A stretch of 64,000 nucleotides of DNA from Octopus sinensis. Lineage: Eukaryota. Below the pieces are notes generated by a model that saw only the letters and a list, made by a program, of their open reading frames with translations, was not told the DNA's origin and searched no databases. Made by a program: the position numbers and the translations under genes. Every line of letters starts with the position of its first letter. The stretch's first letter is position 1. Positions 6,301-54,816 of this stretch are shown here, in pieces. The stretch covers positions 156,550,001-156,614,000 of the forward strand of contig NC_042998.1 in the NCBI RefSeq assembly GCF_006345805.1, given 5' to 3'.

Positions 6301-7300
6301 CCAATTTCTTCAATGTAGCAAGATTGATTGCTTGGGGATCGAAATTAATGAACAACTGCTCATACTTTAGATGTCAATGACAAATATTTTCCCGAGCGTC
6401 GGTCGTTACAGGAGAAATACCACATAGATAAAGTAACCGAAGAAGCCATTTTTGATACCGGCACTGCAACAGACGAATTCATGAAAGTGAGAAATGTTTC
6501 CGTGACTCTTAGCAAATTTGATATTGTTGAGGCATTACATCTTTCTAGCATCAACAGAAACAATGAGAGACCCAAATTTAACGAATCAGTCTATCGATAT
6601 TCTTCTTCCAGTGTATGGACTTGGGTTCAATATACTACATCGTGTTGGAAACTAGAAATTGGCTTATCCTGAGCGCAGATATGACTCTCAACCATACATC
6701 CAAAATCAGATACAGACAAAACAATTTCATCCATGCCACTAAGATTCAGTCTATAACAGCATGGTGGAGCAAGTACTGAATCATGCTAGAACTGTGCACT
6801 TGTGTTTTGTATAAAACATCATTTTACATTTGTACTCAACAATTTTCTGAATTTTTTCCCCTAAACAACTGTGGTTCTTGGGGCCTCCTTCTTTGGAAAT
6901 ATGCTCATGTTATATACCAATCTATACCAATTCGAATTCAAATTCAACAACCTTCACTTCATCCAACCACAAAAATTATTTACGAAAAGACTAGTTTTGA
7001 TAGTTATATGATATTTATTACTGGGGGTTGGTTAAGACAACTGTTTTAAAATATTTCTTTTTTTCGCTATTTCTCAAATGGATACGACAATAACCAATCT
7101 CTTGCATTCTTTTGCTACAGTTTATTTAATACAGGAACTGTATGATTATAATTCAGAACATAAAATTTGAACTATATTTTATGAAAATCGAAGCACTATC
7201 AAATTTTAAAATAATTTAGAAACATAAATGTTTTATTGATAACCTCAGATATTTAATATTCTTGGAGTGTTAAATATATAGCTAATGAAAATTTATCATT

Positions 7301-7310
7301 ATGACGTCAT
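7301..7310. promoter_or_regulatory. Perfect CRE/ATF palindrome ATGACGTCAT
   Basis: Exact TGACGTCA core at 7302-7309, 246 bp upstream of the phosphorylase ATG; function not shown. Confidence 0.4.
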
Positions 7311-7554
7311 AAAGAAATTGAAAACCCTCCCACTTTCATTTATATGTTAGAACATAAAATACATTAAAGGAAGAGGAATCGGAAGCTAGCCAGTTCTACC
7401 AGTAATTCTTTCGTTTATCAATCTCTACGGTATTTTTTTGACTAATCACTTACATATAGACATATATTTATGCTTTATGTGTTGTGTGTAGAACGTATGC
7501 GAAGGCATATAAATCCAAAATTGTAAAATAATACTTCAACAATCGGTTATAAAT

Positions 7555-10062
7555 ATGGATGAGAGTGCTGTTATGAAAAGACGTATTACGATTCGTGGCA
7601 TTATAGAGAAAGATACTGTTGAGAATATAAAGAAAGCTTTCAACCGCCACATCCATTTCACTTTAATGAGAGATAGAAATGTGGCGACCCCAAGAGATTA
7701 TTATTTTGCTCTGGCGCTGACAGTAAAAGACCAGTTGATTGGGCGTTGGATTCGAACGCAGCAATACTATTACGATGTTGATCCAAAACGAGTTTATTAT
7801 ATTTCTATGGAATTTTACATGGGGAAGTTTTTGAAAAATGCCTTGATTTGTTTGAATAGTCTAGCGAATTATGAAGAAGCGATGAAGCAGTTAAACCTAG
7901 ATTTGAACAGTTTAATTGAACAAGAAGAAGAAGCAGGTTTAGGAAACGGTGGTCTTGGAAGATTAGCAGCTTGCTTTTTAGATTCCATGGCTACAGTGGG
8001 TATCGCTGGTTATGGATATGGAATTCGGTACAATTACGGTATATTTAAACAGTTCATAGAAAATGGATGGCAGTGTGAATCAGCCGACGAATGGCTTCTG
8101 TACGAAAATCCATGGGAAAAACAAAGACCGGAACACAAAGTAGATGTACATTTTGGAGGTCGCGTTGAATTGATTGATGAACGATTTCAGTGGGTTGATA
8201 CCTACAAAGTAATTGCAACGCCATATGACTACCCAGTTTCCGGTTTTGCAAATAATAAAGTAAACACACTTAGACTTTGGTCAGCTAAAGCACCACATAA
8301 TTTCCAAATGCAATTTTTCAATAATGGTGATTATATAAGAGCTGTTTTAGATAGAAATACGGCAGAAAATATCTCCTGTGTCCTGTACCCCAATGATGCT
8401 TTCTTTGAAGGTCAAGAATTGCGACTCAAGCAAGAGTATTTCCTAGTAGCAGCAACTTTACATGATGTTATACGAAGATTCAAAGCTGACATTTATGGAC
8501 GTAGTAAAAAAGGAAAAGCAATGTTCTTTAACCTACCAAAGAAAGTTGCAATTCAGTTGAATGACACCCATCCTGCATTGGCAATACCAGAGTTAATGAG
8601 AATTCTTGTAGATGAAGAATACATTGACTGGGACGCTGCATGGAGCATTTCCTGTCAGACATTTGCTTATACAAATCACACATTAATGTCAGAAGCACTT
8701 GAACGGTGGCCTGTTACCATATTCGAATCATTACTTCCAAGACATTTGCAACTTATTTACCATATCAACCATTTACATTTAGAAAAAGTTGCTAGAGAAT
8801 ATCCCAACGATCCTGATCGCATTCGGCGAATGTCCGTATTCGAGGAATACCCTTATAAGAAAATAAACATGGCATACCTTTGTATCGTCGGTTCACATGC
8901 AGTTAATGGTGTTGCACATCTTCACTCGGAACTGATAAAATCAAGTCTTTTCAAAGATTTCTATGAAATGTCACCCGAAAAGTTTCAAAATAAAACAAAT
9001 GGAATATCCCCAAGACGATGGATTCTCCAGTGTAACACTGCACTAGCGGATGCACTTGTGGACAAAATTAGTAATCAGTGGGTAACTAATTTATCAAGAT
9101 TAAGGGAGATTGAATCATTTATTTATGATCAAGACTTTGTAAGAACTATAATGTCAATAAAACGAGAAAATAAAAGAAAACTCGCCCAGTATATTAAAGA
9201 TCACTATGACAAAACTATAAACGAAGATTCCTTGTTTGACGTTCAAGTCAAAAGGATCCATGAATATAAGCGCCAGTTATTGAACTGTTTGCATGTAATT
9301 ACCAAATACTGTCGTATTAAATACGAAAAACAAAATGTGGTGCCCCGAACAGTTATAATTGGAGGTAAAGCAGCACCAGGATATAAAATGGCCAAACTCA
9401 TAATAAAGTTCATTAACAATGTTTCTCTTGTCATCAACAATGATCCTGACATAGGAGATCAACTTAAAGTAATCTTCCTGGAAAATTATTGTGTATCTTT
9501 AGCAGAACTAGTAATTCCAGCTGCTGAGCTAAGTGAACAAATTTCAACAGCTGGCACAGAAGCTTCGGGAACAGGCAACATGAAATTTATGGCTAACGGG
9601 GCTTTAACAATTGGCACACTGGATGGAGCTAATATTGAAATGGCAGAAGAAGTAGGGCAAGAAAATATGTTTATTTTTGGACATTGTGTTGATGAAGTAA
9701 ATAGAATCAGAGAATCAGGATATGATCCATCAGAATATTATCATGGATCAAATGAATTGAAAAGAGCATTAGATTTAATCAAAGATGGCTATTTTAGCCC
9801 GGAAGACTCTAGCTTGTTTACAGATATATTTAACAATTTGTTTTATAGCGACGAATATTTACTGTTAGCTGACTTCCAGTCATATATGGACGCACAGGAT
9901 CAAGTAGAACAACTTTACAGAAGGCCTGAAGAATGGACCAGAAAAGCAATCCTAAATATTTCTGCTTGTGGGCGATTTTCAAGTGACAGAACAATACGAG
10001 AGTACTCCAGAGATATTTGGAACGCAGAACTATCAGAAACCCTTCTTCGTCCAAACCTCTAG
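7555..10062 (+). CDS. GlyP: Glycogen phosphorylase, animal type, single exon, 835 aa
   Basis: Uninterrupted ORF with [63 protein letters not shown] (PLP lysine K677 = rabbit K680), FSSDRTI; animal N-terminal regulatory segment RRITIRG; Kozak-like AATATGG. Confidence 0.98.
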
Positions 10063-10434
10063 ATATTTGTAATCAATAACTTCCATTTTTGATTATCTTT
10101 ATTTCAAAATTATTCTCAAATTAGAAAGTACCATAAAAAGTTTTCGTTCACTTAATTTTTGTATTCATTTTATCATCCAGTCACGATCCTTAAAAAAGAT
10201 AGTTAAACTCAGAAAATTATCGTTTTTCTTTTGCTAATGCTTTTCATGACATAACTAGAAACGTTCCTTTTCCTTCCTTGTAATATTCTTTTTCATAAAA
10301 AGGGAACAGATGTAGTATGGTTTTCTTTTTGTTTCATTTTAGTCGTGATCAAACTCCACCATCAACGTGTTTTGTTAAAAAATGTAACATATTCAGTGCT
10401 TCTCTGAATATGTTTAAAAGCTTGTTGCTCGCTT

Positions 10435-10436: not shown

Positions 10437-10519
<83 letters not shown>

Positions 10520-10532
10520 CGTGTGTGCGTGT
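10437..10532. repeat. (TG)n microsatellite
   Basis: Direct reading. Confidence 0.97.
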
Positions 10533-10919: not shown

Positions 10920-13900
10920 TGTTACACATTCATATCTATGTGTATACGTAGGTATACGTGTGTAGAATACATCCCCACTTTTGGTACTATTTTGTTAGTA
11001 AACAGTACGAACTGTGTCTAAAATATATATGTATTACTACGCTGAATGTTGACAGTTCGTGTAACAAATAAAGTAAATAAACACGTAAACAATAACAATG
11101 GCTTCATTGAGTTGTCTATCACCCATCAAGAACGAAACTGCACATAACATGGTGGCAGCGGTAAATAATTAATCGGAAACTGTGCCTTTACAAAACAAAA
11201 ACACAACGAACCAGAAAATTAACAAACTAAACATCGCTTCGTCTTCGGACACACATACACGAGGATCCAAAATGGCAACCCCCGTCGCCGTACAGATGAA
11301 TCTACATCCGATCATGAACTGGGACTCCGATGATATCGTGGAAGCATTCAAGAAATTCAAACAAAAAACTCAACTAGCTTTCAAAAGTTTCCTGAAAAGG
11401 CATAACTGACGATGAAAAGGTAAGCTACATCCTTTTATGGACGGGAGAAAAGGGCCTAGACCTATTCAATAGCTGGGATATGTCAGAATCGGGTTGCAAT
11501 AACCCAAATACACTTTTAGAGAAATTTGAAAAGCACCTAGAGCCCAGATCGAACCATAGAATTCACAGATACGAATTCCAGGTCCTGAAACAAGACCCAC
11601 AAGAAACGATTGACAATTTCCTGTCCAGACTAAAGAATGTTGCCGAAAAATGCAAATTCAAAGATAAGGACGAAAGAATTGTTGATCAACTAATATGGGG
11701 GTGTGCTCATAAAGAAGTCCAGGAATCCCTCATAGGTAAGGCCGCTCTCCAGATGATAGAAGAAGTAGACACTGCAAGAGCATTCGAAGCCACTACCAAA
11801 CAAATGGCCTCACTTAGCTTACAAACAAGCTCACTTGATAGCAGTGTAGATACTGTATCTAGGCACAGGACACATACCCGCAAACAAAGAACATGCCAGT
11901 ACTGTGGTATGGAGCATGAGTTCAATAACCGGAAGAAATGTCCTGCATTCGGTACACACTGCAAAGCATGTGAAAAACCCAACCACTGGGGGGAAATGTG
12001 TAGGGTAACAAAATCCCAGAAAAACAAGCCCCAATTTTCAAAGAGGAGCGGAAATAGAAAACAAAGAGATATACATGCCCAACAACAAGAACAAAACACC
12101 TCAGAGGAGGAATTTTTGGCAGTCGGTGCAATAAATGTGCATGAGATGGGAAATGACGACCAGAAAAAAAATGAGGCATACACGACGATACGAATACAAA
12201 AGAAGTCTGGCAAGAAACGAATAAACATTGACTTAAGGCTAAAGATTGACACTGGAGCCCAGAGTGATATCTTGCCTGTCAACCTCTACAAAAAGATGTT
12301 CCCAGAACACATAACAAAAGAGGATAAAGTCAAAGAAGGAATCCTCACACCAAGTGATGTAATCCTCAGTGCGTACGGAGGTACCAGGATTCCACAACTG
12401 GGCAAAACAACAATCACAGGGACACACAAAGGAAAATAATCAAGTGTTCTTTTTATGTCACAAGAACAGAAGGACCAGCAATTCTTGAACTTAATACCTG
12501 CAAAAAGCTAAATATTGTGTCAATCAATGGTGAAGTGAAGGCAGTTCCGAGCAGGATTGACAGAGATATGCCTATCAAAGATCGACCACAAATCACAAAC
12601 AAAGAGGAACTGAATGCTTTGACGATACAGTCGGGTGCTTTGTGAAATGTGGATACCATATAACAGTCGACCCCAATATCAAACCAATTGTTCACCCACC
12701 TCGCCGCGTCCCTCTAGAAATAAAAGAGAAGCTGAAGGCAGAGTTGGACAGAATGGAAAAAAAAGAAATAATCACCAAAGTGACACGACCAACAGACTGG
12801 GTGAATTCAATTGTAATCAAAGAAAAATTCAATGGTGCCCTACGGATATGCCCCGACCCAGGCATTAAAAAGAGAGTACCATCTAAATTCAACCCTTGAA
12901 GAAATCACACCATCATTGGCTGGATCCAAATTATTCAGCAAACTGGATGCCAGTAATGGGTACTGGAATGTAAAGATAGAGAAAGAGTCATCCATGCCCA
13001 CTACCTTCAACACACCATTTGGCAGATATCGATTCACCGACTCCCATTTGGATTGAAGGTGAGCCAAGATGTTTTCCAGCGCCAAATAGATGAGACCTAC
13101 CAAGGCTGCAAGGGAGAAATTGGGATAGCAGATGACATTCAAGTGCATGACAAGGATGAGACCACACATGACTTCAATTTACATGAAGCTATGGAGAAAA
13201 CCCGACAAGCAGGCATCAAACTCAATGCAGACGAGTGTGTGATAAAAGAAAAGGAGTGCAAATTCTTTGGAATTATATACTCTGTAGAGGGAGTTAAACC
13301 AGACCCCGCTAAAGTGGAAGCCCTCAGAGATATCAAAGAACCGAAAGACAAGAAGGAACTCAGGAGCTTCCTGGGACTCATCAACTACATGGGAGCCTTC
13401 ATACCCAAGCTGGCCGATCACACTGCAAATCTCCGAGAACTAAACAAAGATGATGTAGAGTTTGATTGGTGTGCTTCACACATACACAGGATTTCAAGAC
13501 AAAAAGCTCATCGGTAAGGAGAGAACTCTGCAATACTATGACAGACGCAAACCAATAATACTCCAAGTCGATGCTTCTATGAGAGGAGTTGGCGCAGCAC
13601 TGATACAGGAAGGTAAACCCATTGCATATGCCTCAAAAGCTCTCTCACCCACAGAGACAAGGTACGCGAATATTGAAAGGGAACTCCTGGCAGTAGTATA
13701 TGGATGCGAAAAGTTCCATACATACTTGTATGGCAGACATTTCAATATAGAAACAGATCATCGCCCGCTAGAACAAATACATAGAAAAAAACTCACGTAA
13801 GCACCAGCCAGACTGCAAAGATTACTGTTAAGGCTTCAAACATACAACTACGATATCAGGTACAAGCCAGGAAAAGACATGATATTGGCGGATGCTCTTT

Positions 13901-15689
13901 CCAGACTATCCTCACATGATAAACAGGAGATGGAATGACTAAGCATAAAGGTCCACCACATTGTAAATGTAACAACCTCAAAGCTATCAGAAATCAAAGA
14001 GGAGACCAGCAAAGATGAAGAACTCCAGCTCCTTACTCAGATGGTGATTCAGGGGTGGCCAGAAAAGAGACATTAAGTGCAGTCCCTCATTCGTGAATAT
14101 TGGGCCATCCATGATGATATATCAGTGGAGAATGGAATCCTGATGGATGGATCCCGAATAATTATACCCAAGTCAATGCAAAAAGAGATTCTTTACAAGA
14201 TCCACCAAGGGCATCTAGGAATGGAGAAATGCAAGCTCCGAGCCAAGTCAGCAGTATATTGGGCAGGCATGTACAAAGACATAGAAAAGACAGTTTCTAC
14301 ATGCCACATCTGTCAAAAGTACAGAAACTCACAACAAAAGGAGGAAATGATATCTAGTGACATCCCAAGAAGGCGATGGCAAACTATTGGATCTACATCT
14401 GTTCACAGAGAGCCAAGAATGGCCTGCTACTGCTCCAAATTTCCATTTGTGAGAAAAGTGAAAGACCTGACAGCCAAAACAATCACTACAGTGTCTCGAG
14501 GACTTCTAGCAGAGCAAGGAATACCAGAGTAGATCATATGTGACAATGGAACGCAGTTCACATCGCAAGAATTCAAAAAGCTAGTCGATGAGTATGGGTT
14601 CAATATCACAACCTCACCCCCACACTACCCCAAAGGTCATGGGTTTATAGAAAGACAGGTGCAGACAGTGAAGAGAACACTAGTCAAATGCCGAGAGACT
14701 AAGGAAGACCCACACCTGGTACTTCTGTCCTTACGAGTGACACCACTGAGAGCTGACGTGAAATCCCCAGCAGAAATGCTGAATGGCAGGAAGTACAAAA
14801 CTACCCTGCCAGCTAAGATCCAACCTCCTACTGACCAGGAAGAGACAAGAACAAAGCTAGCAGCCACTCAAGAACAATCACAGAAATATTACAACAAACA
14901 TGCACAATACTTACCTGAGATACTTGGAGGACAACATGTGCATACTCAAGATCCCATAACTAAAACATGGATCCCAGCACAAGTTGTCAGTAGAGCTGAA
15001 ACTCCAAGATCATATATAATAGAAACGGAATCTGGTGGGCAGCTGAGACACAACAGGGCCCACATCCGCCCAACACCAAAGCTGTCGAGGAAAACGTATA
15101 CAACACCTGCTGCATCAGTGACAACACCCACAGAATCATCACCCCAACGGGCACCAACCACATATCATCAGCCCAACAACACACCTCAGACACCGGTGCG
15201 AAGCACAAGATCTACCAGATGGAGATCGAACATTCTGCCACCGGTTCGATACCGTTAAAGAAAAAAAGAAGAAAATGAACGATAAATAACTAATTCTGCT
15301 AGATTACAAAGCAGAAAACCACGTGAGTAGACAGAATAATCTCACGGTTTCTGCTGCAGGATTGCCACCTTGCGCTGAAAATCCATTGGAGTAAGGGAGA
15401 CTACTTATATTTGTCTTCACTGCCAAAAGACCCCTTTATTTTTTTTCAAGAAGAAGGGATGTTACACATTCATATCTATGTGTATATGTAGGTATGCGTG
15501 TGTAGAATATATCCCCCCTTTTGGCACTATTTTGTTAGTAAACAGTACGAACTGTGTCTAAAATATATATGTATTACTACGCTGAATGTTGACAGTTCGT
15601 GTAACAAATAAAGTAAATAAACACGTAAACAATAACAATGGCTTCATTGAATTGTCTATCACCCACCGAGAACGAAACTACACATAACA
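10920..15689 (+). mobile_element. Ty3/Gypsy LTR retrotransposon copy 2, full length (4770 bp), decayed
   Basis: LTRs 10920-11149 and 15460-15689 (230 bp, 9 differences), 5-bp TSD ACACC (10915-10919, 15690-15694), PBS 11150-11162 complementary to the tRNA-Leu 3' end, PPT AAGAAGAAGGGA 15448-15459. Confidence 0.97.
11272..15258 (+). pseudogene. gag-pol of Gypsy copy 2 with several frameshifts and stops
   Basis: Gag CCHC x2, protease DTG, RT IADD, RNase H VDAS..ERELLA..ETDH, integrase H..H..C..C and DDE region split over many ORF-track fragments. Confidence 0.93.
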
Positions 15690-21334: not shown

Positions 21335-24300
21335 CTAGTTTCAGCTCATGAGCTGAGGCCATGCTGGGGCACCGCCATTTGGTGTTGCTACATGGTTTTA
21401 CTTCACGAATGCTTTTTAGCAACTGCCATTTGGTGCATGAGAGAGTTCGATGCAGCTGTCCTCATCTGCACCTCCTGCCGTGAAGTTGGTTCATCTGGGA
21501 TACCTGACAGGAAGAGATCCAGTTTCATTTTAAAGACATCTGCATCCACCCCATGCAGGTCTCTTAGGTTCTTCGGGAGGATATTGAAGAGCTGTGGGCC
21601 TCGGAAGCCCAGGCTATCACAGTATCTTGTCCTACATCTTGATGGCAAATTTGGAGTCCTAGGCACCACGCAGTGGCGCCCAGTTCTGGCATTTGTGTAA
21701 CTCTCGATGCCAAAGTTCAGGACACTTCCCTCCAGGAGCTTCCAGATGTATATTATGGCATATCTTTCCCGCCTACGCTCCAGGGAATATAATTTTAATC
21801 TCTTGAGTCTTTCCCAGTAGCTTACATTCTGCATAGAGGCTATCTTCTTCGTGTAGCTTCGTTGGATCGCCTCAAGTTCTGTGATCAACTTGACACTGGA
21901 TGGTGACCATAGCTGAGAGCAATAGTCAAAGTGGCTTAAGACAAGTGTCTTCCAGAGGACCATCATGGTTTCTTGTTCTCTTGTTCTAAAGGTTCTAAGA
22001 ATCCAGCCAGCCAGCCGTCCGTCTACATTTCATCGTCATTTTAGCAACATGTACATGAAAGGTCACGTCATCACTCATGTGAATACCCAGGTCACGCACT
22101 GATTGTGCCTCTGGGATTGCAATCCCTCCGGGTCCAGTGTATTCATTGGGTATTGCATTCAGTTTTGCATGCTGATAGTATAAAGCTTGAAACTTTCCAG
22201 CATTGAACTGCATGCTATTCTTTTCAGCCCACTTGTATATTTCGTCCAGCTCACATTGCAGGTGTTTAGTGTCCTCAGGGTTCTGTATTGCCTGTGAAAC
22301 TTTTGTATCATCTGCATAACTTGTGATCGTGACTCTCTGCGTGGCTGAGGGCATGTCTGAGAGGGCCATTATGAACAGTAGTGGTCCCAGAACAGTGCCC
22401 TGCGGAACACCGCTCACTATTTGTGTGTTAATGGAGGTGGCCCCATTGGCTACTACCACCTGACTTCTATCCTTCAGAAAGTCATGAAGCCATTCTCCCA
22501 GTTTTCCAACTATGTTGAGATCACGCAGTTTGTGACATATCATTCCATGATCGACTTTATCAAAGGCCTTTGCAAAGTCGAGATATATCACTTCCACATT
22601 TGAGTGGTTGAGCAGCCGTTTCAGCACCCAGTCATAGTGTTGTAGGAGCTGAGTTAAACAGCTTCTCCCTGGTCGGAAACCATGTTGGGTGTCGGGCAGC
22701 AAGTCATTCTCTTCAAGGAAGGTGATCAGCTTCCTTCTGACTATTCGTTCCATGACCTTGCTGATGTGTGAGGTCAGAGAGATAGGTCTATAGTTCTTGG
22801 CTTCCGCTCTGCTACCTCCTTTATGAATGGGGCATATTTTACCTTCCTTCAGTTTTCCTGGAAGTTTGCCAGCTGCAAGGAAGCTCTGAAAGAGGAACTG
22901 CAGTGGTCTTGCTAGGACTCTCTTACATGCTTTTAGGAGGATTGCCGGGAATCCATCGGGGCCAGTAGCTGAGTCTGTTTTCATTTCATCTATAGCCTTG
23001 GTTACATCGTCTTCCTTTATATCGATGTAATCTATCGTCGCCGCCTCTGATTTTATATCTGCAGTGGTAAAAAAGTCAGTTGGATTGGTGATTTGGAGAT
23101 GCCCAAGGGGTGGAGTGAAAACACTCTTGAATTGCTCATTCAGTATTTCACTTACCCTCATTGGTTTTCCTGTAAGTGTGCCATCCTTTTCGAGGAGTGG
23201 CCCTATTCTACAGTGCACTGTAGCTGTTTCTTTGGCATACCTGTAGAAAGCTCTGGGGTTAGATTTTATGATTTCTATAGCCCAGGTTTCTTTGTCTGCT
23301 CTTTCTTTTTCATGGGAGAGTTGCAGACATTTTTCGATTTCCAACAGTTTTATTTTTAGGCGGGACTTTTCACTGCTTTCAATCTGTTTGTTTAGGCGAT
23401 TTGAAAATTTCGTACGCCGTCTCATTAAAATTTTCCTCTCTCTGGGGATTTTGTTCTTGTGTACAGTGGCCTTTCTCTCTGGGACACATTTGTAGCATAT
23501 GGCTTGCATTACAGACATGAATTGTTGAAGTTTCACGTCGATGTCTGGCGAGGAGAGACATTTAGGCCAGTTTTGTTTGAGGATCTCTTTCTCAATTTGT
23601 TTCCAGTTTGCCTTATGGTAGTTCAAGCTGGAAAGATTTTGAGGGTTTCCTGTAGGCTGCATGTCCGTGCTCTCTTTTGGCCCGTACATGGTCAGCTCTA
23701 TCATGTTGTGATCCGAGAGTAGTGTCGGTGTCACTTTCACATTATGGATGAGATCCATGTCATTTGTGAAGCAGAGATCCAGTGTATTACCTGCCCTGGT
23801 TGGTTGGAGTATTACCTGCTCCATGTACAGGGTGTTGATGAGGTTCAGGAGGGACCTCGCCTGTCCTCGTTCACATCTTGTCATTCCTGGGAGAGAAAGG
23901 CCCTCGGGCCATCTGACATTGGGCAGATTGAAGTCTCCCATAAGAAGCACACCTATGTGTTGTTCTAATGTGGTTAGAATTTCTTCTATTTTTATAAGGC
24001 AATCTTCAAACTTGCCCACATGGCTTGGGGCATCTGGAGGGCGATATGTAGCACACACAACTACATCAAGTTGCTTAATATGTACAATTAGTGTGTCACA
24101 CACCGAGTTTGAGTATGACAAGAGGACCTGGGGTGTGAGGTCCTCCCGGATGTACATAGCAACACCTCCATGACTCCTTTCTTTCCTGTCGGTCCGTAGT
24201 ACAGCATACTGTGGTATATGTAACTCCGCATCTGCTATGTCCGGTTTCAGGTGCGTTTCCGTAAGTGCTATGCATAAGGCTTGATTGCATGCAACAAAGT

Positions 24301-24690
24301 CTCTCAGGAACGGGATCTTTGTCCTGTTACTGAGTGTTTGCAGTCCTCTGATGTTCAGTAGGAGCATCGAGGTGAGGTGTACGTTGTTGCCGGCGGTGTC
24401 CATCCTGTGTCTGTTTGCTGTGGTGGTCTGGTATATAGTGGGTAGTCCCACCTGCGGGCTTGGGTTTGATGAAGCCAGGTCAGCTGCTGTACAATCTTTT
24501 GTGCCATGCACAAAAAAGATTGTTGCTCAGCAGCTGCTCTTTCGACAACATCATGTTGGTGGTTTGTGGCGCGCACAACATCTGCGTACCTCCGCTTTGG
24601 GGCAGGTGGTGCGTGGTCCATCCCTTTTCTTTGTGTTGATGGTTTGTCCATCTGCCTCGTGTCTCTGTGGCAGGGTCCCCGATGTGCATA
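21305..24690 (-). mobile_element. CR1-group LINE, 5'-truncated in ORF1, (AATC)n tail
   Basis: APE and RT domains in ORF2; tail (ATTG)n on + strand 21305-21334; (TA)n tracts on both sides. Confidence 0.92.
21403..24511 (-). pseudogene. LINE ORF2 (AP endonuclease + reverse transcriptase) with one frameshift
   Basis: LNIRGL, LTETHL, MGDFNLP, TLDL, SDHN, GPDG, QHGFRPGRSC, LDFAKAFDKV, GVPQGTVLGP, YADD; a 4-bp CCAG duplication at 22003-22014 separates ORFs 21995-24511 and 21403-21966. Confidence 0.93.
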
Positions 24691-32898: not shown

Positions 32899-35800
32899 TG
32901 TTACACATTCATATCTGTGTATACGTGCATCCCCACTCTTGGCACTATTTTGTAGTGAATAGTACAAACTGTGTGTAAAGTATATAATGTATTACTACGC
33001 TGAATGTCGAGTCCGTGTAACATGAAAAGTCAATAAACGCGTAAACAATAACAATGGTTTTCATTTGGTTGTCTATCCCATTAGAACCCAAACTACACAC
33101 AACATGGTGGCAGCGGTAAATAATTAATCGAAAACTGTGCCTTTACAACGAAACAGAAACACAACAAACGAGGAATTAACAAACAAAACATCGCTTCGTC
33201 TTAGGACAACAAACACGACGATCCAAGATGGCGACCCCCGTCGCCGTACAGAGGAATCTACATCCGATTATGAACTGGGATTCTAGTGATGTCGTAGAAG
33301 CATTTAAAAAATTCAAACAAAAAACTCATCTAGCTTTCAAAAGTTTCCTGAAAGGCACAACTGACGATGAGAAGGTAAGCTATATCCTTTTATGGTCAGG
33401 TAATAAAGGAATAGACCTATTCAATAGCTGGAATATGTCAGAATCGGACTGCAATAACCCAGACACACTTCTTGAGAAATTTGAAAGGCACCTAGAGCCC
33501 AGGTCGAACCATAGAATTCACAGATACGAATTCCAGGGCCTGAAACAAGACCCACAAGAAACAATTGACAATTTCCTGTCAAGAATGAAAAATGTTGCAG
33601 AGAAATGCAAATTCAAAGACGGAGGAGAGAATTGTAGACCAATTAATATGGGGGTGTGCCCACAAAGAAGTACAAAAATCACTAATAGGTAAGGACGCTC
33701 TCCAGTTGGTAGAGGCAGTAGACACTGCAAGAGCATTCGAAGCCACTACCAAACAAATGGCCTCACTTAGCTTACAAACAAGCTCACTTGATAGCAGTGT
33801 AGATACTGTATCTAGGCACAGGACACATACCCACAAACAAAGAACATGCCAGTACTGTGGTACAGAGCATGAATCTAATAACCGGAAAAAATGTCCAGCA
33901 TTCGGTATACACTGCAAAGCATGTGGAAAACTTAACCACTGGGGGGAAATGTGTAGGGTAACAAAATCCCAGAGATACAAGCCCCAATTTTCAAAGAGGA
34001 GCGGAAATAGAAGAGATATACATGCACAACAGCAGGAACAAAACACCTCAGAGGAGGAATTCTTGGCAGTCGGCACAATAAATGTGCATGAAATGAGAAA
34101 AGACGACCGGAAGAAAGAAAATGAGGCGTACACGACAATAAGAATACAGAAGAAGTCTGGCAGGAAACGAACAAACATAGACTTAAGGATAAAGATTGAC
34201 ACTGGAGCCCAGAGTAATATCTTACCTGTCAACCTCTACAAAAAGATGTTCCCAGAACACATAACAAAAGAGGATAAAGTTACACAAGGAATCCTCACAC
34301 CAAGTGATGTAATCCTCACTGCGTACGGAGGAACCAGGATCCCACAACTGGGTAAAACAACTATCACAGGGACACACAAAGGAAAAATAATTAAGTGTTC
34401 TTTTTATGTCACAAGAACAGAAGGGCCAGCAATTCTTGGACTCAATACCTGCAAAAAGCTAAATATTGTATCAATCAATGCTGAAGTGAAAGCAGCGCCA
34501 AGCAGGATTGACAGTGATATGCCTATCAAAGATCGACCACAAATCACAAACAAAGAGGAACTGTACCCTGAATGCTTTGACGATACAGTCGGGTGCTTTG
34601 TGAAATGCCGATACCATATAACAGTCGATCACAATATCAAACCAATTGTTCACCCACCTCGCCGCGTCCCTCTAGAAATAAAAGAGAAGCTGAAGACAGA
34701 GTTGGACAAAATGGAAAAAAAGGAAATAATCACCAAAGTGACACGACCAACAGACTGGGTAAATTCAATTGTGATCAAGGAAAAACCCAATGGTACCCTA
34801 CGGATATGCCTCGACCCAAGGAACTTCAACAAGGCATTAAAAAGGGAGTACCATCCAATTCCAACCCTTGAAGAAATCACACCATCATTGGCTGGATCCA
34901 AATTATTCAGCAAACTGGATGCCAGCAATGGGTACTGGAATATAAAAATAGACAAAGAGTCATCCATGCTCACTACCTTCAACACACCATTTGGCAGATA
35001 TCGGTTCAACCGACTCCCATTTGGATTGAAGGTGAGCCAAGATGTTTTCCAGCGCCAAATAGATGAGACATACCAAGGCTGCAAGGGAGCAATTGGAATA
35101 GCAGATGACATCCAAGTGCATGGCAAGGATGAGACCACACATGACTTCAATTTACATGAAGCTATGGAGAAAACCCGACAAGCAGGCATCAAACTCAATG
35201 CAGAAAAGTGTATAATAGAGGAAAAGGAGTGCAAATTCTTTGGAATTATATACTCTGCAGAGGGAGTTAAACCAGGCCCCGCTAAAGTGGAAGCCATCAG
35301 AGACATTAAAGATCCTAAAGACAGGAAGGAACTCAGGAGCTTCATGGGACTCATCAACTACATGGGAGCCTTCATACCCAAGCTGGCCGATCACACTGCA
35401 AATCTCCGAGAACTAAACAAAGATGACGTAGAGTTTGATTGGTGTGCTTCACACACACAGGATTTCAACGCAATCAAAAAGCTCATCAGTAAGGAGACAA
35501 CTCTGCAATACTATGACAGACGCAAACCAGTAACACTCCAAGTCGATGCTTCTATGAGAGGAGTTGGCGCAGCACTGATACATATGCCTCTAAAGCTCTC
35601 TCACCCACAGAGACAAGGTACGCGAATATTGAAAGGGAACTCCTGGCAGTAGTATATGGATGCGAAAAGTTCCATACATACCTGTATGGCAGACATTTCA
35701 ATATAGAAACAGACCATCGCCCGCTAGAACAAATACATAGAAAACACCTCATGAAAGCACCAGCCAGACTGCAAAGATTACTGTTAAGGCTTCAAACATT

Positions 35801-37624
35801 TGACTATGATATCAGGTACAAGCCAGGAAAAGACATGATATTGGCGGATGCTCTTTCCAGACTATCCTCACATGATAAACAGGAGATGGAAGGACTAAGC
35901 ATAAAGGTCCACCACATTGTAAATGTGACAACCACAAAGCTAGCGAAAATCAAAGAGGAGACCAGCAAAGATGAAGAACTTCAGCTCCTTACTCAGATGG
36001 TGATTCAGGGGTGGCCAGAAAAGAGACATCAGGTGCAGCCCCTAATTCGTGAATATTGAGCCATCCATGATGATATATCAGTGGAGAATGGAATCCTGAT
36101 GGATGGATCCCGAATAATTATACCCAAGTCAATGCAAAAGGAGATTCTTGACAAGATCCACCAAGGGCATCTCGGAATGGAAAAATGCAAGCTCCGAGCG
36201 AAGTCAGCAGTATATTGGGTAGGCATGTACAAAGACATAGAAAAGACAGTTTCTACATGCCACATCTGTCAAAAGTACAGAAACTCACAACAAAAGGAGG
36301 AAATGATATCTAGTGACATCCCAAGAAGGCCATGGCAAACTTTTGGAGTAGATCTGTTCACAGGGGGCCAAGAATGGTATTTGATAATGGCCTGCTACTA
36401 CTTCAAATTTCCATTTGTGAGAAAAGTGAAAGACCTGACAGCCAAAACAATCACCACAGTGGCTCGAGGACTTCTAGCAGAGCAAGGAATACCAGAGCAG
36501 ATCATATGTGACAATGGAACCCAGTTCACATCACAAGAATTCAAAAAGCTAGCCGATGAGTATGGGTTCAATATTACAACTTCATCTCCACACTATCCCA
36601 AAGGTCATGGGTTTATAGAAAGACAGGTGCAGACAGTGAAGAGAACACTAGTCAAATGCCGAGAGACTAAGGAAGACCCACACCTGGCACTTCTGTACCT
36701 ACGAGCGACACCACTGAGAGCTGATATGAAATCCCCAGCAGAATTGCTGAATGGCAGGAAGTACAAAACTACCCTGCCAACTAAGATCCAACCTCCTATT
36801 GACCAGGAAGAGACAAGGGCAAAACTAGCAGCCACTCAAGAACAACCATAGTGGTATTACAACAAACATGCACAGTATTTACCTGAGATACTTGGAGGAC
36901 AACATGTGCATACTCAAGATCCCATAACTAAAACATGGATTCCAGCAAAGGTTGTCAGTAGAGCTGAAACTCCAAGATCGTATATAATAGAAACGGAATC
37001 TGGTAGGCAGCTGAGACGCAACAGGGCCCACATCCGCCCAACACCAGAGCTGTCGAGGAAAACGTGTACAACACCTGCTGCATTGGTGACAACACCCACA
37101 GAATCATCACCCCAACGGGCACAAACCACATATCATCAGCCCAACAACACACCTCAGACACCGGTGCTAAGCACAAGATCCACCAGATGGAGAAAGAACA
37201 TTCTGCCACCGGTTCGATACCGTTAAAGAAAAAAAAAAGAAAGAAAATGCAAAGATAAGTAACTAATTCAGCTAGACTACAAAGCAGAGGCAGAATAATC
37301 TCACGATTTCTGCTGTAGGATTGCCACCTCAGGCTGACAATCCATAGAGTAAGGGAGACTACTCATAATTGTCTTCACTGCCAAAAGACCCCTTTATATT
37401 TTTTTCGAGAAGAAGGGATGTTACACATTCATATCTGTGTATACGTGCATCCCCACTCTTGGCACTATTTTGTAGTGAATAGTACAAACTGTGTGTAAAG
37501 TATATAATGTATTACTACGCTGAATGTCGAGTCCGTGTAACATGAAAAGTCAATAAACACGTAAACAATAACAATGGTTTTCATTTGGTTGTCTATCCCA
37601 TTAGAACCCAAACTACACATAACA
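32899..37624 (+). mobile_element. Ty3/Gypsy LTR retrotransposon copy 3, full length (4726 bp), youngest
   Basis: LTRs 32899-33104 and 37419-37624 (206 bp, 2 differences), 5-bp TSD GATGT (32894-32898, 37625-37629), tRNA-Leu PBS 33105-33117, PPT 37407-37418. Confidence 0.97.
33228..37226 (+). pseudogene. gag-pol of Gypsy copy 3 with few lesions
   Basis: 686-aa and 256-aa open stretches with DTG, IADD, VDAS, H2C2 and DNG..E; short deletion near 33620, 19-bp deletion near 35582, stops at about 36058 and 36849. Confidence 0.94.
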
Positions 37625-39250: not shown

Positions 39251-39996
39251 CTGAACCGTTTGTTCAGTTGAACTTGAGTTCTTGGGGGAGAAAACGCAAC
39301 TCTAATTCATACTCTACGAATGATCACTATATCTGGGACTATAAAAAGTCTGCAAGATTTTCTTAAGATTTAAAGGATGATGAACAAATAAGATGCTTCT
39401 CTTTACAACCAAGCAGGTGGCGGGTCAAAATTAAAATTAGAGAAAGAAAACATACGTATCCGTATTTACCTGTGTATATACAAACACGCATATAAAATTT
39501 ATCTATACTGTTAAATCACACAATGAAGGCCTCCTTGCACTAAAACATTGTCTCGATTTACGTCCTGACCCTCAAACTAGCACATCTACCCTCCTCCACT
39601 TGGCCAAATTAGTCCGCTCTTTAAATTGTTTCTCGTTCGCTGAGTACACTTGCTTCGCCACTGGCTGAAACGCTGAATCAGAGCTGACCTTGGTAAGCAC
39701 AACACATGTAAAACAACAGTTGTGATTACATGAGATCAAACCTGACTAGAATAAGATTTTTGTCATTTTCTTAATCTGTGATAATATCAGTAATATTTAC
39801 AAAATACTGTTTGAAGTTTAAATATTGGTCAAATACGTGACAGAGAATAAATAATTTTAACAAACTGAAGTATATTCTGAAGTAATTAATAGTGGTTTCA
39901 AATTTTGTTTAGGGCGTGGGGTAAGTCGATTACATCGACGACACAAATACACAAGTATAATATACAAATACACGTACATACACACACACATGCACA

Positions 39997-40119
<123 letters not shown>

Positions 40120-42110: not shown

Positions 42111-45100
42111 TTACTTTGTACATATCCAAAACCACGACGGGTTGGTATGTATAATTAGTAAATGGAAAAGCAAACGAAATAAAAAGAGCGAATTTCGGCC
42201 GGTATGTGGGTACATGTTCTTATTGTAGTAGTAAACCATGGACAGTGATAGCATAATGTCGTAAGAGGAAAGAAATTGAACTAGTGAAAGTTATAGAGTC
42301 GAGGGATGTTGTGTCTCATTTCCTCTTCCACACGTCACCTATATATCTCTTTCGATATGGCTACTACGCAAAAAAATGACGCCTCCTTATCCTTGTTAAA
42401 GGAGGAGGGCGGCACAATTTTGATGATAGATTCAGTCGATAACCGTACTCTTTCCGCATCTGACATCAGGTGTTCGACATAGGTTATCAGTCCTCTCAGT
42501 TTCTCACAATGTACGAAGGCGTGCGTGACAGTTTCACTGACACGCCCGCACCTTGGGAATATGGGTGGGGTACCAGCACCATGCTTTGACAACTTCTCTC
42601 GAACTGGCAAGGTATCCCTAACCCATCTTTTAACGGTTTCTGGTGGCTGATGGAGCGCCTCACAAGTGTTGATTTCCCATTCTACAAAAGGCGGAAAAGG
42701 ATCCGTTCCAGCTTGGTCAGCCACACCCCGGGGCAAGGCACAACGTTTAGGCGGTAGGTTATCACAGAGGCTATAAATACCTGTGCAATCTCGGCTCTCT
42801 CTAGCAAGGATAGCAACCTCCCAGACCAAGTCTGGGTTATGGCCGTCACCTTGCCTGTGACCTCCAGTTTTTCTGGAGGTCTGGTCCAAACCAGATCCCG
42901 AGCAATTTAACCGGACCCTCCGTCCAACGTCCCAGGACGCTGTTGGGAGGCATCAGCTTACCCCTCCAGGTGCCGAGTTGCAAGCCGACTGATTTATTCT
43001 GGTTAATTTTTGCTCGCGCCACCGCTTCGCATCTTTTGATGGCGTTTTCTACATGAGGTAACTGCCCTTCATTCGATACGATGATGGTGACATCATCCGC
43101 ATATGCTGTCGCGCTCCTACCATAACATAGATCACGCGGGTCTCCCCCCGTGGCCTCCAACCTCCGCAGCAGTGGCTCAAGAGCCAATACATACAGAAGC
43201 GGAGAGAGGGATTCTGTATGTATTGGCTCTTGAGCCACTGATGCGGAGAAGAAACCGTTCACCCGGACGATTGAATCGATGTCACTATACATAGCATTGA
43301 TCCATCCACAGAAAGTCGGGCCCAGTCCGACCGACCGGAAAACCGCCGCCAGATACGGATGGTCAAACTTATCGAATACTTTAGACTGGTCTAAATTCAC
43401 CAGTGCCCCACCTTTGTCAGAAATTTTACCCACCCGCTCTGTAGTGTAGCGTATGAGGTGAAGGTTGTTGTGTATTGTCCTGCCTGGGATGGCACATGTG
43501 TGTACCTCTCCCACCAGGTCGCCCACGACAAGCCTCATTCTCTTGGCTAACACCTTGGCCAAAATCTTTAACTCTGTGATTAGCAGAGTTATGGGTCTAA
43601 AGTTATTAATGTCATTCCCCTTGCTCGGGTCCTTCCTGATCAGTGTCACTACTCTCCGGCTCACAGATTTGGGAATTCTCCCGTTCTGGTGCCAGTTCGC
43701 GTATACACCGGCCAGTAAGTTCCCGAACAAGTCTGGCATACTCTTATAAAATTCGTAAGGAAGACCATCCAGTCCCGGCGACTTGTCCTCGGGACCCTCG
43801 GAAAGCACCTCTATGACCTCCACAGCTGTAATCGGCCCTTCATAGCGCTCCGCCTCATGTGTCAAGAGACACGGTCCACCGGCCAGGAAATCCCGAAGGG
43901 CATCCCCATGATCCAGCGTCCCGCCCCTCTTGAACAACGCAGCGAAATGCTCCTGAAAGGCCTTATACATCTCTTCTTGTCCGTCGATCTCCTATCCTTG
44001 TTCATTTACCACAGACCTTATCGTAGCATCTACGCCACGTTGGGTTTCTACCGAGCGAGCCCACCCGGCAGCGTTGATACTCTCGCGACCCAGTGCACGT
44101 ACTTTAACCCAGACCCTGCAACCTTCGTGTTTGGCATTGAGGTATCGGTCCAAGACCGATCTCGCCGCAAAAACTTGGGGTGCAGAGCCCACTCTCAGCG
44201 CCTCTTCTAATGCCTTAACTAGAGACTCTTCTACTCTAACCTGCTCTAAACTTAACTGTTTGCTAAATCTAATAAACTCAAGTCGAATGGCTCTTTTGAG
44301 GGCCACTCACCACCGGTTATTCAACATGGTACCGGTGAGTTCCCTCATGACTAACTCCTTAATCTGGTTACGGTATATTTCGCAAGCCAATAGGGTCTTG
44401 TTCAACTTCCAGTAACCAGATCCCTGTCTATAGACTTTATCTATATGCATCTTACACGTCAGCAATTTGTGATCCGTGTAGGGTATATACGTAAACTGTG
44501 GACAGCTAAAAGAGGACCTATCTCTAGTATTCACGACTATCCTGTCTATATAAGACCTGAGAGATCCGTCGTTATTACTCCAAGTCCACATTAGAACTCT
44601 TGGATTTTCGAGTCTGAATCGATCTGCCAGCCTAAACCGCCTCAGCAGATCGATGAGGCATTAGTTACTTTTCCTACCGGTTGAGCCAACGTTATCTAGG
44701 CGTGCGTCTAGAATAGCGTTAAAGTTTCCTAACATTAATATTGTCTTTGACGTCACAAGAAAATCCTCCAGGCGTCGGTAGAACTCATTCCGTTTGCCCG
44801 CTATGCAAGGCGCGTAAATGCCGATCAACCAGAAGGTCTTACCACTGAAAGTCAGATCCAGAACGACCGAATCACTTTCTGGGTCTACAAAGTTTGCACG
44901 TGTCTGCAGAGCCAAGCATTTTCGGATCAAAACCATAACGCCACCCCTCCTCCTTTCCGACTAGGAGACATGATTTTCTCATAGTCTTTTAGGAGGTTTG
45001 AGAAGGCCTGCAGCTTGTCCAGCTTGGTCTCTGTGGCAACCATAATATGAGTTTTACCTGACCTGAGGCTTGCTTCCACTTCGAGCTCAGGCCACGCACA

Positions 45101-50837: not shown

Positions 50838-50914
50838 ATATATATGTGCTTACTCCGGTATATATATATATAAATTCGAAATATTACATTTCTAAATCTG
50901 GAGACATATCACTT

Positions 50915-50980
<66 letters not shown>

Positions 50981-51059
50981 TATATATATATAATCCTAAG
51001 TCTAATTTTATTTAATTTAATCTAATATATTATATTATATATAATATTATATATATATA

Positions 51060-51098
<39 letters not shown>

Positions 51099-51110
51099 TA
51101 TATATATTAC

Positions 51111-51490
51111 TCTTTTACTTGTTTCAGTCATTTGATTGCGGCCATGCTGGAGCACCGCCTTTAGTCGAGCAAATCGACCCCGAGACTTATTCTTTGTAAG
51201 CCCAGTACTTATTCTATCGGTCTCTTTTGCCGAACCGGTAATTGACGGGGACGTAAACACACCAGCATCGGTTGTCAAGCAATGCTAGGAGGACAAACAC
51301 AGACACACAAACACACACATACATATACATATATACGACGGGCTTCTTTCAGTTTCCGTCTCACAAATCCACTCACAAGGCATTGGTCGGCCCGGGGCTA
51401 TAGCAGAAGACACTTGCCCAAGATGCCACGCAGTAGGACTGAACTCGGAACCATGTGGCAAGCTACTTACCACACAGCCACTCCTGCGCC
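51111..51490 (-). mobile_element. tRNA-derived SINE (family B)
   Basis: Head GGCGCAGGAGTGGCTGTGTGGTAAG.., tail ..GGCGGTGCTCCAGCATGGCCGCAATCAAATGACTGAAAC; between (TA)n tracts. Confidence 0.88.
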
Positions 51491-51501
51491 TATATATATA
51501 T

Positions 51502-51532
<31 letters not shown>

Positions 51533-51613
51533 TATATATAATATAATATAATATATATATATATAATATATAATATATATATAATAATATATATATATAT
51601 ATATATAATAATA

Positions 51614-53265
51614 TTAGGGAGTAAATCCAAACTTACAGGGAAAAATTAGATTTAGGATTAAATCTAATTTTATAGTATAAATATATATTATATTAAATTA
51701 GAGATAAAACCACTATTAGGCAAATCAAACAGTGAAAATCATAAGCCAATACATAGAAATAAAATTAATTAAAAAATATAAAAAATATAAAATATAAAAA
51801 TCCAATTAAAATATTTAAATTAAAGTTAAAATTTTAAAAAATTATTTAAATTAATAATTCAAACTTATAAATTATATATATATATATATATTATTATTAT
51901 TATTTTATTTATTTATTTATTTTTTTATAAAAAACCTCACTAAGCTAAGTATATATTTATATTTAAGATCTTTAAATTTTAAATTTTAATATTTTATAAG
52001 TCTTATGGTATAATAGTATTGTTTTTTTTATGTAAATATCGTTGTTTATCTAATTATCGTAATTTTCTATATAATTATTAGATATTAACTTTAAGTTTAT
52101 TCGTAAGAATTTACTTAGCGATAGATATGTTGTTTGATAGCAAGTATACGAGTTGTTTAAAGTTAGATTCATGTATATACATGTATTAATAGCATTAATT
52201 GTAGTTTTAAATTTCTTATAATTATTATTTTAACTTATATATTGTCTTTTTAAATAGTTATTTGCTAGTTATATTATTCCCATTGATAAATATATTTATA
52301 GTATTTATATAACTACGAATTGATTATTTCTTTAAGTATTTTAAATATAAGATTTTTGAAAGTTATTATTTAGCCAACGAGATATAAAGATAGTTAATTT
52401 TCTATAGCGTTCGTTTAAGATTGTTTGTTTGTATTTTTGAAATTAGCTATTTCATCTTTAAATATGAAAAATTAATTTATTAGGTCTTTATTATACGTGC
52501 ATATATATTTATTTGTAGAGATTATTTTAGATTTTAATTACAATATTTAAATACATTTATATATTTTCATTGATAATTTATATATTATTTAAATTTTATA
52601 TTTTAATAATATGAATAGTCATTTTTTTGTAAAATATTTATATAATTAGATATTCACTATTACTGATATTAGATTATTTGTGGGTTTCTTACTTTAAAAA
52701 TGAATACTTAAAAATTAAAATTAATATTTAACATTATAATCGTTGTTTTGACATAATCATAATCGTTAAGTTTCTAGTTTGATAATAGTTTTTTAAGAAA
52801 ATTTATTATATTATTTATTTCTTAAAAAATATTGTTTAAATATTTCTGATTATTTATTAAAATATTACAATTAACCTGAAGATTGACTGTAACCATAATT
52901 CGAATTATTAATTGAATTTAAATTATTGTTATTCGAATTGGTTACGGGCATGAAACGATCGTAGTGTTTTTACTCTTTATCTTATATTAAACTTTTAATA
53001 CTTTTTGATAGTTATATAATAATAAATAAATAAATAAATAAAATAATAATAAATATATATATATATATTCAAAATTTATAAGTTTAAATTATTAATTTAA
53101 ATAATTTTTTTTAAATTTTAACTTTAATTTAAATATTTTAATTGGATTTTTATATTTTATATTTTATATTTTTTATATATTTTTTAATTAATTTTATTTC
53201 TATGTATTGGCTTATGATTTTCACTGTTTGATTTGCCTAATAGTGGTTTTATCTCTAATTTAATA

Positions 53266-53266
<1 letters not shown>
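51614..53266. mobile_element. Extremely AT-rich element with about 190-bp inverted arms, probably Penelope-derived
   Basis: 51686-51873 inverted at 53073-53268; same family as 54817-55140; contains a hammerhead core; embedded in (TA)n. Confidence 0.6.
52874..52965 (+). ncRNA. Degenerate hammerhead ribozyme
   Basis: CTGAAGA 52876-52882; long helix II TGACTGTAACCA/TGGTTACGGGCA; GAAA 52952-52955; palindromic CGATCG; GTA; weak helix I. Confidence 0.6.
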
Positions 53267-53343
<77 letters not shown>

Positions 53344-53889: not shown

Positions 53890-53916
53890 GGGTCCTCGTA
53901 AAGAGAGGTATTACTG
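53890..53916 (-). mobile_element. Single Tc1/pogo (Tigger-like) terminal repeat
   Basis: CAGTAATACCTCTCTTTACGAG on the minus strand next to TA; partner end not found. Confidence 0.35.
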
Positions 53917-54749: not shown

Positions 54750-54806
<57 letters not shown>

Positions 54807-54816
54807 TATATTATAC

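Follow-up and report, generated by a model that had tools for sequence, protein, structure and literature searches.

How does a complete glycogen phosphorylase (GP) gene come to stand without a single intron in a repeat-rich part of an octopus chromosome, and what is its product likely to do? The question is raised by a stretch of DNA of 64,000 nucleotides (the window), which was identified by sequence comparison as Octopus sinensis CM016860.1:156,550,001-156,614,000. The answer supported here, at a rough probability of 0.8, is that the gene, termed paralog A, encodes a functional, catalytically competent GP isozyme, and that it belongs to a family of three lineages (A, B and C), which goes back to one old retrocopy and was subsequently kept by selection.

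An intact single-exon glycogen phosphorylase gene

7555..10062, plus strand: single-exon coding sequence (CDS) of the intronless GP paralog A, 835 amino acids, recognised by its open reading frame (ORF) and by homology

According to the ORF listing, the gene consists of 835 codons, starts with an ATG and contains no internal stop codon. The probability of 835 stop-free codons, calculated from the local base composition with a stop probability of 0.071 per codon, is approximately 2e-27. The Pfam profile PF00343 (carbohydrate phosphorylase) matches the encoded protein with 1074 bits (cutoff 27) over profile positions 1-712 of 713, and human brain GP (PDB 5iko) aligns to it over residues 7-833 with 1212 bits and a single one-residue gap. 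As both matches run over the full length, the ORF is free of introns, frameshifts and truncations. The protein also carries the animal-type N-terminal regulatory segment KRRITIRG, and the ORF is a full-length metazoan GP. Both features, the intact reading frame and the animal-type segment, had been claimed in an earlier note on this DNA and could be verified. A tblastn search of the window with the canonical octopus protein gave one continuous match at 7573-10047 and no further GP copies or exon fragments.

The protein is encoded at O. sinensis CM016860.1:156,557,555-156,560,062 and on O. vulgaris OX597815.1, the two being identical, and its counterpart in O. bimaculoides (XP_052834373) is 98% identical. 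Paralog A is present in three Octopus genomes and in a fourth octopod.

The canonical multi-exon gene

A search seeded with the Haliotis enzyme led to the canonical octopus GP (P0160, corresponding to XP_029634504 and CAI9721930), a protein of 850 amino acids, which is 77% identical to Haliotis GP. Its gene is located on CM016862.1 in O. sinensis and on OX597817.1 in O. vulgaris, and thus on a different chromosome from paralog A (CM016860.1 and OX597815.1). Exact-match mapping revealed 17 coding exons across 42 kb; the GP gene of Haliotis rufescens comprises 18 coding exons across 49.5 kb. All 16 introns of the canonical octopus gene occupy positions shared with Haliotis and are therefore ancestral, and at none of these 16 positions is the window ORF interrupted. 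The window protein is about 61% identical to every canonical GP (61% to that of the octopus and 62% to those of vertebrates), while canonical GPs are 71-77% identical to one another across phyla.

The multi-exon paralog for which the earlier note had proposed to search does exist in the same genome, and the window gene is not the only phosphorylase, as the note had allowed it might be. The protein was rightly described as clearly diverged, and a multi-exon parent was rightly expected; the figure of about 20 exons has to be replaced by 17 coding exons for the octopus gene. The O. bimaculoides model of the canonical protein (XP_014774569; locus L012, CM046604.1) differs from the O. sinensis model around residues 394-417, where the exon 9/10 junction reads through about 22 non-conserved codons, which inflated dN until they were excluded; this junction is probably a mis-modelled splice site.

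A small family of intronless paralogs

In the homolog search, only three clusters were nearer to the window protein than the approximately 62% identity typical of all other animal GPs. Lineage A comprises the window protein, its O. bimaculoides ortholog and a contig of another octopod (91% identity). Lineage B consists of O. bimaculoides XP_052834372, O. sinensis XP_036356236 and one O. vulgaris model; paralog B has 831 amino acids and is 70% identical to A. Lineage C is represented by three sequences of 827-837 amino acids, which are 68-70% identical to A and B. Homolog searches among 5.8 billion proteins, one of them seeded with C, returned no members beyond these clusters. For every member whose locus was fetched, the gene span equals the CDS length, and the members of all three lineages are hence intronless. 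The O. sinensis copy of paralog B lies close to the window:

CM016860.1:156,539,710-156,542,205, minus strand, outside the window: paralog B, intronless GP (locus L008)

It is arranged head-to-head with A, 15.3 kb upstream of the ATG of A and 7.8-10.3 kb to the left of window position 1. The same divergent A/B pair is found in O. bimaculoides with a spacing of 23.9 kb, and the fourth octopod (SRR118693xx runs) possesses both A (contig L002) and B (contig L013). In a neighbour-joining (NJ) tree, the clade of A, B and C has a bootstrap value of 100% and the grouping of A with B one of 86.5%. The three lineages are a small, old cephalopod family, and the octopus GP isozymes number three, namely A, B and the canonical enzyme, and not two. 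The proposal that an old retroposition had created a second isozyme consequently holds for the extra isozyme and its age, and falls short in the count.

Selection on the intronless copies

Substitution rates were estimated by the method of Nei and Gojobori and evaluated with Fisher tests (omega denotes dN/dS):

A, O. sinensis and O. bimaculoides: dN 0.0099, dS 0.041, omega 0.243, p 3e-5
A, O. sinensis and the more distant octopod (contig L002): dN 0.042, dS 0.197, omega 0.215, p 1.7e-21
B, O. sinensis and O. bimaculoides: dN 0.0084, dS 0.067, omega 0.124, p 2.6e-12

For lineage C, omega is about 0.05, a value based on two sequences with a saturated dS of about 1.4. The canonical gene, compared between O. 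sinensis and O. bimaculoides after removal of the mis-modelled exon junction, gave an omega of 0.18, which is indistinguishable from that of A or B. The same constraint is visible in the identity between the window gene and contig L002, which amounts to 96.8% at the second, 94.4% at the first and 88.4% at the third codon position. As the flanks are 87-88.5% identical, third positions evolve like flanking DNA. Paralog A is kept under purifying selection, as had been claimed from the intact reading frame, and its omega of 0.215-0.243 lies far from the value near 1 that had been named as speaking against a functional gene. Because the copies are today constrained about as strongly as their parent, their large divergence must have accumulated earlier.

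Origin of the family

As 16 ancestral introns were lost at once and the copy lies on another chromosome, we infer retroposition of a spliced mRNA. The position of the family among animal GPs was examined by a maximum-likelihood (ML) placement scan, using our own code with an approximate BLOSUM62-derived rate matrix (+F +G4), 28 taxa, 841 sites and a species-tree backbone. Among 43 graft points, the best one places A/B/C as sister to the coleoid canonical GPs, which are represented by the octopus enzyme and a Sepia-type sequence whose cluster contains Acanthosepion pharaonis 'PYG'. The leading placements are as follows, with the difference in log-likelihood (delta lnL) and the support from resampling of estimated log-likelihoods (RELL):

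Sister to coleoid canonical GPs: delta lnL 0, RELL 0.49
Vertebrate stem: delta lnL -1.7, RELL 0.34
Ambulacrarian stem: delta lnL -5.2, RELL 0.08
Mollusc stem: delta lnL -9.0, RELL 0.016

The stem of the intronless clade measures 0.39 substitutions per site versus 0.087 for that of the coleoid canonical enzymes.

Single residues point in the same direction as the best placement. They were compared across about 207 proteins (198 canonical and nine A/B/C sequences). At position 14, the N-terminal phospho-acceptor, 99% of the canonical sequences have Ser; only those of the two coleoids deviate, with Thr in its place. Thr14 is likewise found in nine of nine A/B/C sequences; in the window ORF it is residue 12 (window positions 7588-7590). 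The exchange of Lys/Arg9 for Leu occurs among canonical enzymes only in those of coleoids, and position 9 is Leu, Met or Val in A/B/C. The same pattern is seen for 'IKK' before FNRH and for R60K. An origin from the coleoid canonical gene is thus favoured by the Thr14 and Leu9 states together with the best ML placement, and is not statistically secured. The retrocopy likely arose on the cephalopod or coleoid stem, after the Ser14 to Thr exchange and before most other changes of the coleoid canonical enzyme, a timing that is not proven.

Beyond the intronless genes, Thr replaces Ser14 in all coleoid GPs examined, including the canonical enzymes of Octopus (P0160) and of the Sepia-type cuttlefish (P0155), and the other 196 canonical sequences have Ser. 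As far as can be judged from these proteins, this would imply a cephalopod-wide change in the target site of phosphorylase kinase.

Protein features and likely function

The catalytic machinery of the intronless paralogs appears complete. Of 28 catalytic and pyridoxal phosphate (PLP) positions checked, all are conserved except Asn284; those retained in A, B and C include the PLP lysine Lys680, Lys568, Arg569, Lys574, His377, Asn484, Glu672-Gly677, Gly134-Leu136 and Asp283. The phospho-site contacts Arg43 and Arg69 and the residues Arg309, Arg310, Tyr75, Gln71 and Gln72 of the adenosine monophosphate (AMP) site are likewise present, and Tyr196 is replaced by His. Around the phosphorylation site, the window protein reads K-R-R-I-T14-I-R-G, with Thr for Ser as in the coleoid canonical GPs; paralog B lacks the basic kinase-recognition residues (QQQITLCG).

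Asn284 is invariant in the 198 canonical sequences and is replaced by Ala in A and C and by Thr in B, with Asp283 and Phe285 being kept. The gate-loop motif Asp283-Asn284-Phe285 is thereby incomplete in all three lineages; it is a regulatory feature and not a catalytic one that defines the family. Asn284 forms a hydrogen bond with alpha-D-glucose, whose binding shuts the 280s loop and makes the inactive T state more stable (PMC11465516).

Apart from this residue, the paralogs differ from canonical enzymes at many otherwise rigid positions. Of the 354 columns with an invariance of 98% or more among canonical GPs, each paralog deviates at about 11-12%, and the cephalopod canonical enzymes do so at 0.8-1.4%. 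At 21 invariant positions, nine of nine A/B/C sequences are altered, mostly to the same new residue across lineages; among these changes are V40M, L87M, R93K, T98A, N101C, G116N, E123I, D128E, A154G, L380M, N588C, the deletion of P594, R649C (next to Tyr648) and N284A (Thr in B). The sharing of most new residues by A, B and C points to a burst of change on the stem, followed by constraint. Divergence is focused in the N-terminal tail and in the segment 81-135, where identity to the consensus amounts to 56% as opposed to 87-89% in canonical cephalopod enzymes, and both the N- and the C-terminal tail are shortened and remodelled. Conservation is highest in the tower-helix and gate-loop region. 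Lineage C additionally shows changes in the glycogen-storage site (E433H and a deletion of K437). Taken together, A, B and C would be active phosphorylases with weakened glucose-driven gating, and the function proposed for paralog A is deduced from selection and residue conservation.

Upstream and downstream elements

Conservation between octopods extends beyond the coding sequence, and the following elements could be assigned:

7282..7554, plus strand: conserved proximal upstream region, putative core promoter and short leader (O. sinensis compared with contig L002)
7302..7309, plus strand: perfect palindromic cAMP-response-element (CRE) consensus TGACGTCA, 253 nt upstream of the ATG
7508..7513, plus strand: TATAAA box, 47 nt upstream of the ATG
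10063..10135, plus strand: conserved 3' flank block (octopod comparison)

The 300 nt in front of the ATG are well preserved in three octopods. The proximal upstream region is about 85-97% identical to contig L002 per 40-nt bin versus 88% at third positions of the CDS, and TGACGTCA at 7302-7309 and TATAAA at 7508-7513 are identical in three octopods. In lineage C, TGACGTCA is located at -166, -156 and -155 in the three sequences (including L007:9865, L003:116 and, at -155, L017) and TATAAA at -41 or -38. Both motifs lie there inside nearly identical blocks, although the third codon positions of these genes are only 59.5% identical; over the 271 nt upstream, lineage C shows 61% matches, whereas shuffled sequences average 37% and do not exceed 45%. 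Lineage B carries TGACGTAA, a one-mismatch CRE and putative functional variant, at -160/-152 in three species (L008, L001 and L013) and a TATAAT-like box near -33. Lineages A and C are separated by saturated synonymous divergence and yet share CRE and TATA box. Outside these promoters, TGACGTCA occurs at three independent sites in the approximately 330 kb of cephalopod DNA examined. This arrangement points to an ancestral compact CRE+TATA transcription unit, and it may be speculated that transcription of the paralogs responds to cAMP.

Within 1 kb upstream of the canonical ATG, neither a CRE nor a TATA box was found, a weak negative as the transcription start site of the canonical gene is undefined. 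A promoter carried over from the parent gene is for this reason weakly disfavoured.

Downstream of paralog A, the first 21 nt after the stop codon are identical in three octopods, and AATCAATAAC at 10071-10080 sits where lineage C has AATAAA, about 10 nt after its stop. The block at 10063..10135 is thus a possible poly(A) signal region; a canonical AATAAA or ATTAAA is missing for 1 kb 3' of the stop codon of A. The O. bimaculoides assembly (L004:12582 onward) contains a run of N from 72 nt 3' of the paralog A stop codon, which limits the comparison of the 3' flank there to the Logan contig.

Alternative explanations

Several observations weigh against descent from a coleoid retrocopy that gave rise to functional isozymes. 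As the earlier note had stated, neither a poly(A) tract nor a credible target-site duplication (TSD) could be found at the window gene, which leaves the absence of introns as the mark of retroposition; the loss of both is expected, since the event is old and the gene was later copied at the DNA level. An 11-nt direct repeat at 7107 and 10226 was considered as a TSD and rejected, as it is not conserved in contig L002 and as the promoter that A has in common with lineage C lies between its two copies. In the NJ tree, the A/B/C clade has a long stem and branches off basally among the invertebrates, a position that was judged to be long-branch attraction after the ML scan. The ML placement itself is non-significant after full re-optimisation, with Kishino-Hasegawa-type z values of at most 1.2 for all alternatives, and only 3 of 23 derived residues are shared with cephalopods, which is no more than in control clades. 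The gene-tree analysis that had been suggested therefore gave a divided answer: ML ranks a position next to the coleoid canonical enzymes first, while NJ puts the clade at the base and RELL gives 0.49 compared with 0.34 for the vertebrate stem. Furthermore, the CRE is a single 8-mer per locus, whose two hits in the window against 0.6 expected are unremarkable. Logan contigs L002, L003 and L013-L017 were considered as transcripts and rejected, as a microsatellite at an end and the promoter DNA identify them as genomic; all Logan contigs retrieved are genomic and have no bearing on expression.

Some of these points would suit an ancient DNA-level paralog, which predates cephalopods or molluscs, lost its introns independently and disappeared from other lineages. 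NJ sets the clade outside all invertebrate canonical GPs; the ML analysis does not reject attachment to the mollusc, lophotrochozoan or deuterostome stem; in sequence identity, the octopus canonical GP (61%) is not closer to the window protein than vertebrate GPs are (62%); and the overall number of derived residues shared with cephalopods remains at background level. This history is nevertheless improbable, as it requires 16 independent intron losses and many lineage losses, while the named members of the clade among 5.8 billion proteins all belong to Octopus, Thr14 and Leu9 are common only to the coleoid canonical GPs and the intronless clade, and the best ML placement joins these two; with a stem of 0.39 substitutions per site, a basal placement is an expected artefact. 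Somewhat less probable still is a protein that is under selection and no longer a GP, be it a pseudoenzyme, a scaffold binding glycogen or PLP, or an enzyme of altered substrate specificity. The burst at invariant positions, including N284A, R649C next to Tyr648, N588C and the deletion of P594, the low identity of residues 81-135 to the consensus (56%) and the altered glycogen-storage site of lineage C (E433H, K437 deleted) would fit such a change of function; the catalytic and PLP set including Lys680 is conserved in A, B and C, however, and conservation within the protein peaks in the tower and gate region.

The selection tests effectively refute a processed pseudogene that is dead or decaying and owes its intact ORF to chance or to a young age. 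The gene does sit amid retroelements, the Logan contigs are all genomic and say nothing of expression, and 42 of the 354 canonical-invariant positions are altered; a stop-free ORF of this length has a probability of about 2e-27, however, and a protein 39% diverged from its parent is intact in at least four octopods, with omega values of 0.22-0.24 that are significantly below 1 and similar to that of the parent, intact catalytic residues, stem changes conserved across A, B and C, and conserved promoter blocks. An assembly artefact, contamination or horizontal transfer has nothing specific in its favour, since the idea stems only from the sight of an intronless gene in a repeat-rich region. It is refuted by the identical protein, found in syntenic position in the independent assemblies of O. 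sinensis (GCA_006345805.1) and O. vulgaris (GCA_951406725.2), by the 98% identical O. bimaculoides ortholog with the same B neighbour, by flanks that align between species, and by the metazoan regulatory N-terminus with its coleoid-specific states.

A proposed course of events

The earlier note had called the window gene a probable functional retrogene, and the core of this view is supported by the loss of introns, the location on another chromosome, the divergence of the protein and its conservation across octopods, with function being judged from selection and residues. According to the retrocopy model preferred here, a spliced transcript from the multi-exon canonical gene would have been reverse-transcribed and inserted on another chromosome, whereby all introns disappeared in one step. 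Rapid evolution on the stem would then have altered the 21 invariant positions, remodelled the N-terminal tail and residues 81-135 and led to the loss of Asn284. The retrocopy may have gained a compact TATA and CRE promoter or may have been inserted beside one, and a later inverted duplication at the DNA level would have created the head-to-head A/B pair. Purifying selection has acted on all copies from that point on. The enzyme most likely phosphorolyses glycogen via PLP at Lys680 and would have kept allosteric control by AMP and the phospho-site, while the glucose-driven closure of the 280s loop, by which the T state is locked, is probably weakened. Transcription might be responsive to cAMP and CREB, which is speculative.

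Neighbourhood of the gene

The remainder of the window is rich in retroelements. Domain matches identified an endonuclease and reverse transcriptase (RT) ORF of the long interspersed nuclear element (LINE) type and several Ty3-like parts:

21995-24511, minus strand: LINE-type endonuclease (Exo_endo_phos) and RT ORF, 838 amino acids
33592-35652: Ty3-like RT/RNaseH
36081-36851: integrase
42846-43970: RT fragment

One long terminal repeat (LTR)/Ty3-like retroelement is present in two 4.8-kb copies at 10920-15689 and 32899-37624, which are 90% identical to each other and carry fragments of gag-like, RT/RNaseH and integrase ORFs; a third, partial copy lies in inverse orientation at 717-2102. The gene had been described as isolated among transposons that are all decayed. 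It does have retroelement neighbours; it is not isolated, as the intronless paralog B lies 15.3 kb upstream, beyond the window. General decay does not apply either, since the 838-aa LINE ORF keeps both its endonuclease and its RT domain and, given its length, may be only lightly decayed. Among simple repeats, a (TG)48 tract is found at 10437-10532, 375 nt 3' of the GP stop codon, and a (CACGCACG)n array at 39970-40116. The region 50900-55400 is very AT-rich (GC 21-29%), with dense (TA)n, (AAT)n and related microsatellites.

Comparison with known systems and biological meaning

The paralogs share the fold family PF00343 and the length of canonical metazoan GPs (PYGB, PYGM, PYGL and octopus XP_029634504), as well as the PLP lysine, the phosphate- and glucose-binding residues, the AMP-site arginines and the N-terminal phospho-acceptor segment. 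They are set apart from the canonical gene with its 16-17 introns by the complete lack of introns, as seen in paralog A, by an identity of only about 61%, by remodelled tails and by a compact upstream region of their own. The models of A and B are already contained in RefSeq as 'glycogen phosphorylase, brain form-like'.

Classical examples of metabolic isozymes derived from retrogenes are mammalian PGK2 and PDHA2, which are expressed in the testis from compact promoters. The octopus gene resembles them in that it was copied, free of introns, from a metabolic housekeeping gene with many exons, lies on a different chromosome, is under purifying selection and provides an extra isozyme; in contrast to them, it is much older, more diverged and itself duplicated into a head-to-head pair.

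Long-retained intronless copies are also known from another protein family. Retroduplication, long retention and further diversification have been reported for intronless opsins in teleosts (PMC10339062), and retroduplication with long-term retention for an opsin retrogene in moths (PMC5070202); for the octopus gene, functional evidence is of an evolutionary kind only. In amphioxus, a single-exon retrocopy of the multi-exon gene SYCP1 is reported to have become functional via regulatory elements at its new locus (PMC5803294). Whereas the amphioxus case, as described there, is one of replacement, the multi-exon parent is retained intact in the octopus, where the retrocopy is an addition.

In full-text literature searches, no account of GP genes that are intronless or retroposed was found, be it for cephalopods or for other organisms. 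A retrogene-derived isozyme that was later duplicated is a well-known type of event, and the present family is a tidy and unsurprising case of new-gene origin. What is new here is the shared CRE+TATA arrangement of A and C, with a near-CRE in B, and the loss of Asn284 in all three lineages. In a flying-squid genome study, 'pygb' and 'phkg1' are among 16 genes with high expression in photophore transcriptomes (PMC10225486); this 'pygb' might be of the lineage-C type.

Retrogene-derived isozymes of core metabolic enzymes offer a clear view of how new genes gain new regulation. The conserved CRE+TATA unit, should it act as a core promoter, would be among the few that have been identified for genes of cephalopods. 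A more far-reaching proposal, which is tentative and in our estimate rather unlikely, is that the family is coleoid-specific, is inducible by cAMP and CREB through its CRE+TATA unit, is uncoupled from glucose-dependent locking of the T state and provides a tissue-specialised 'fast-on' isozyme for the mobilisation of glycogen; in that case, testis, nervous system and squid photophore would be candidate tissues. GP is a textbook allosteric enzyme, and A, B and C are long-selected natural variants with a changed phospho-site context, changed residues 81-135 and no Asn284, which could reveal the parts of GP allostery that are dispensable.

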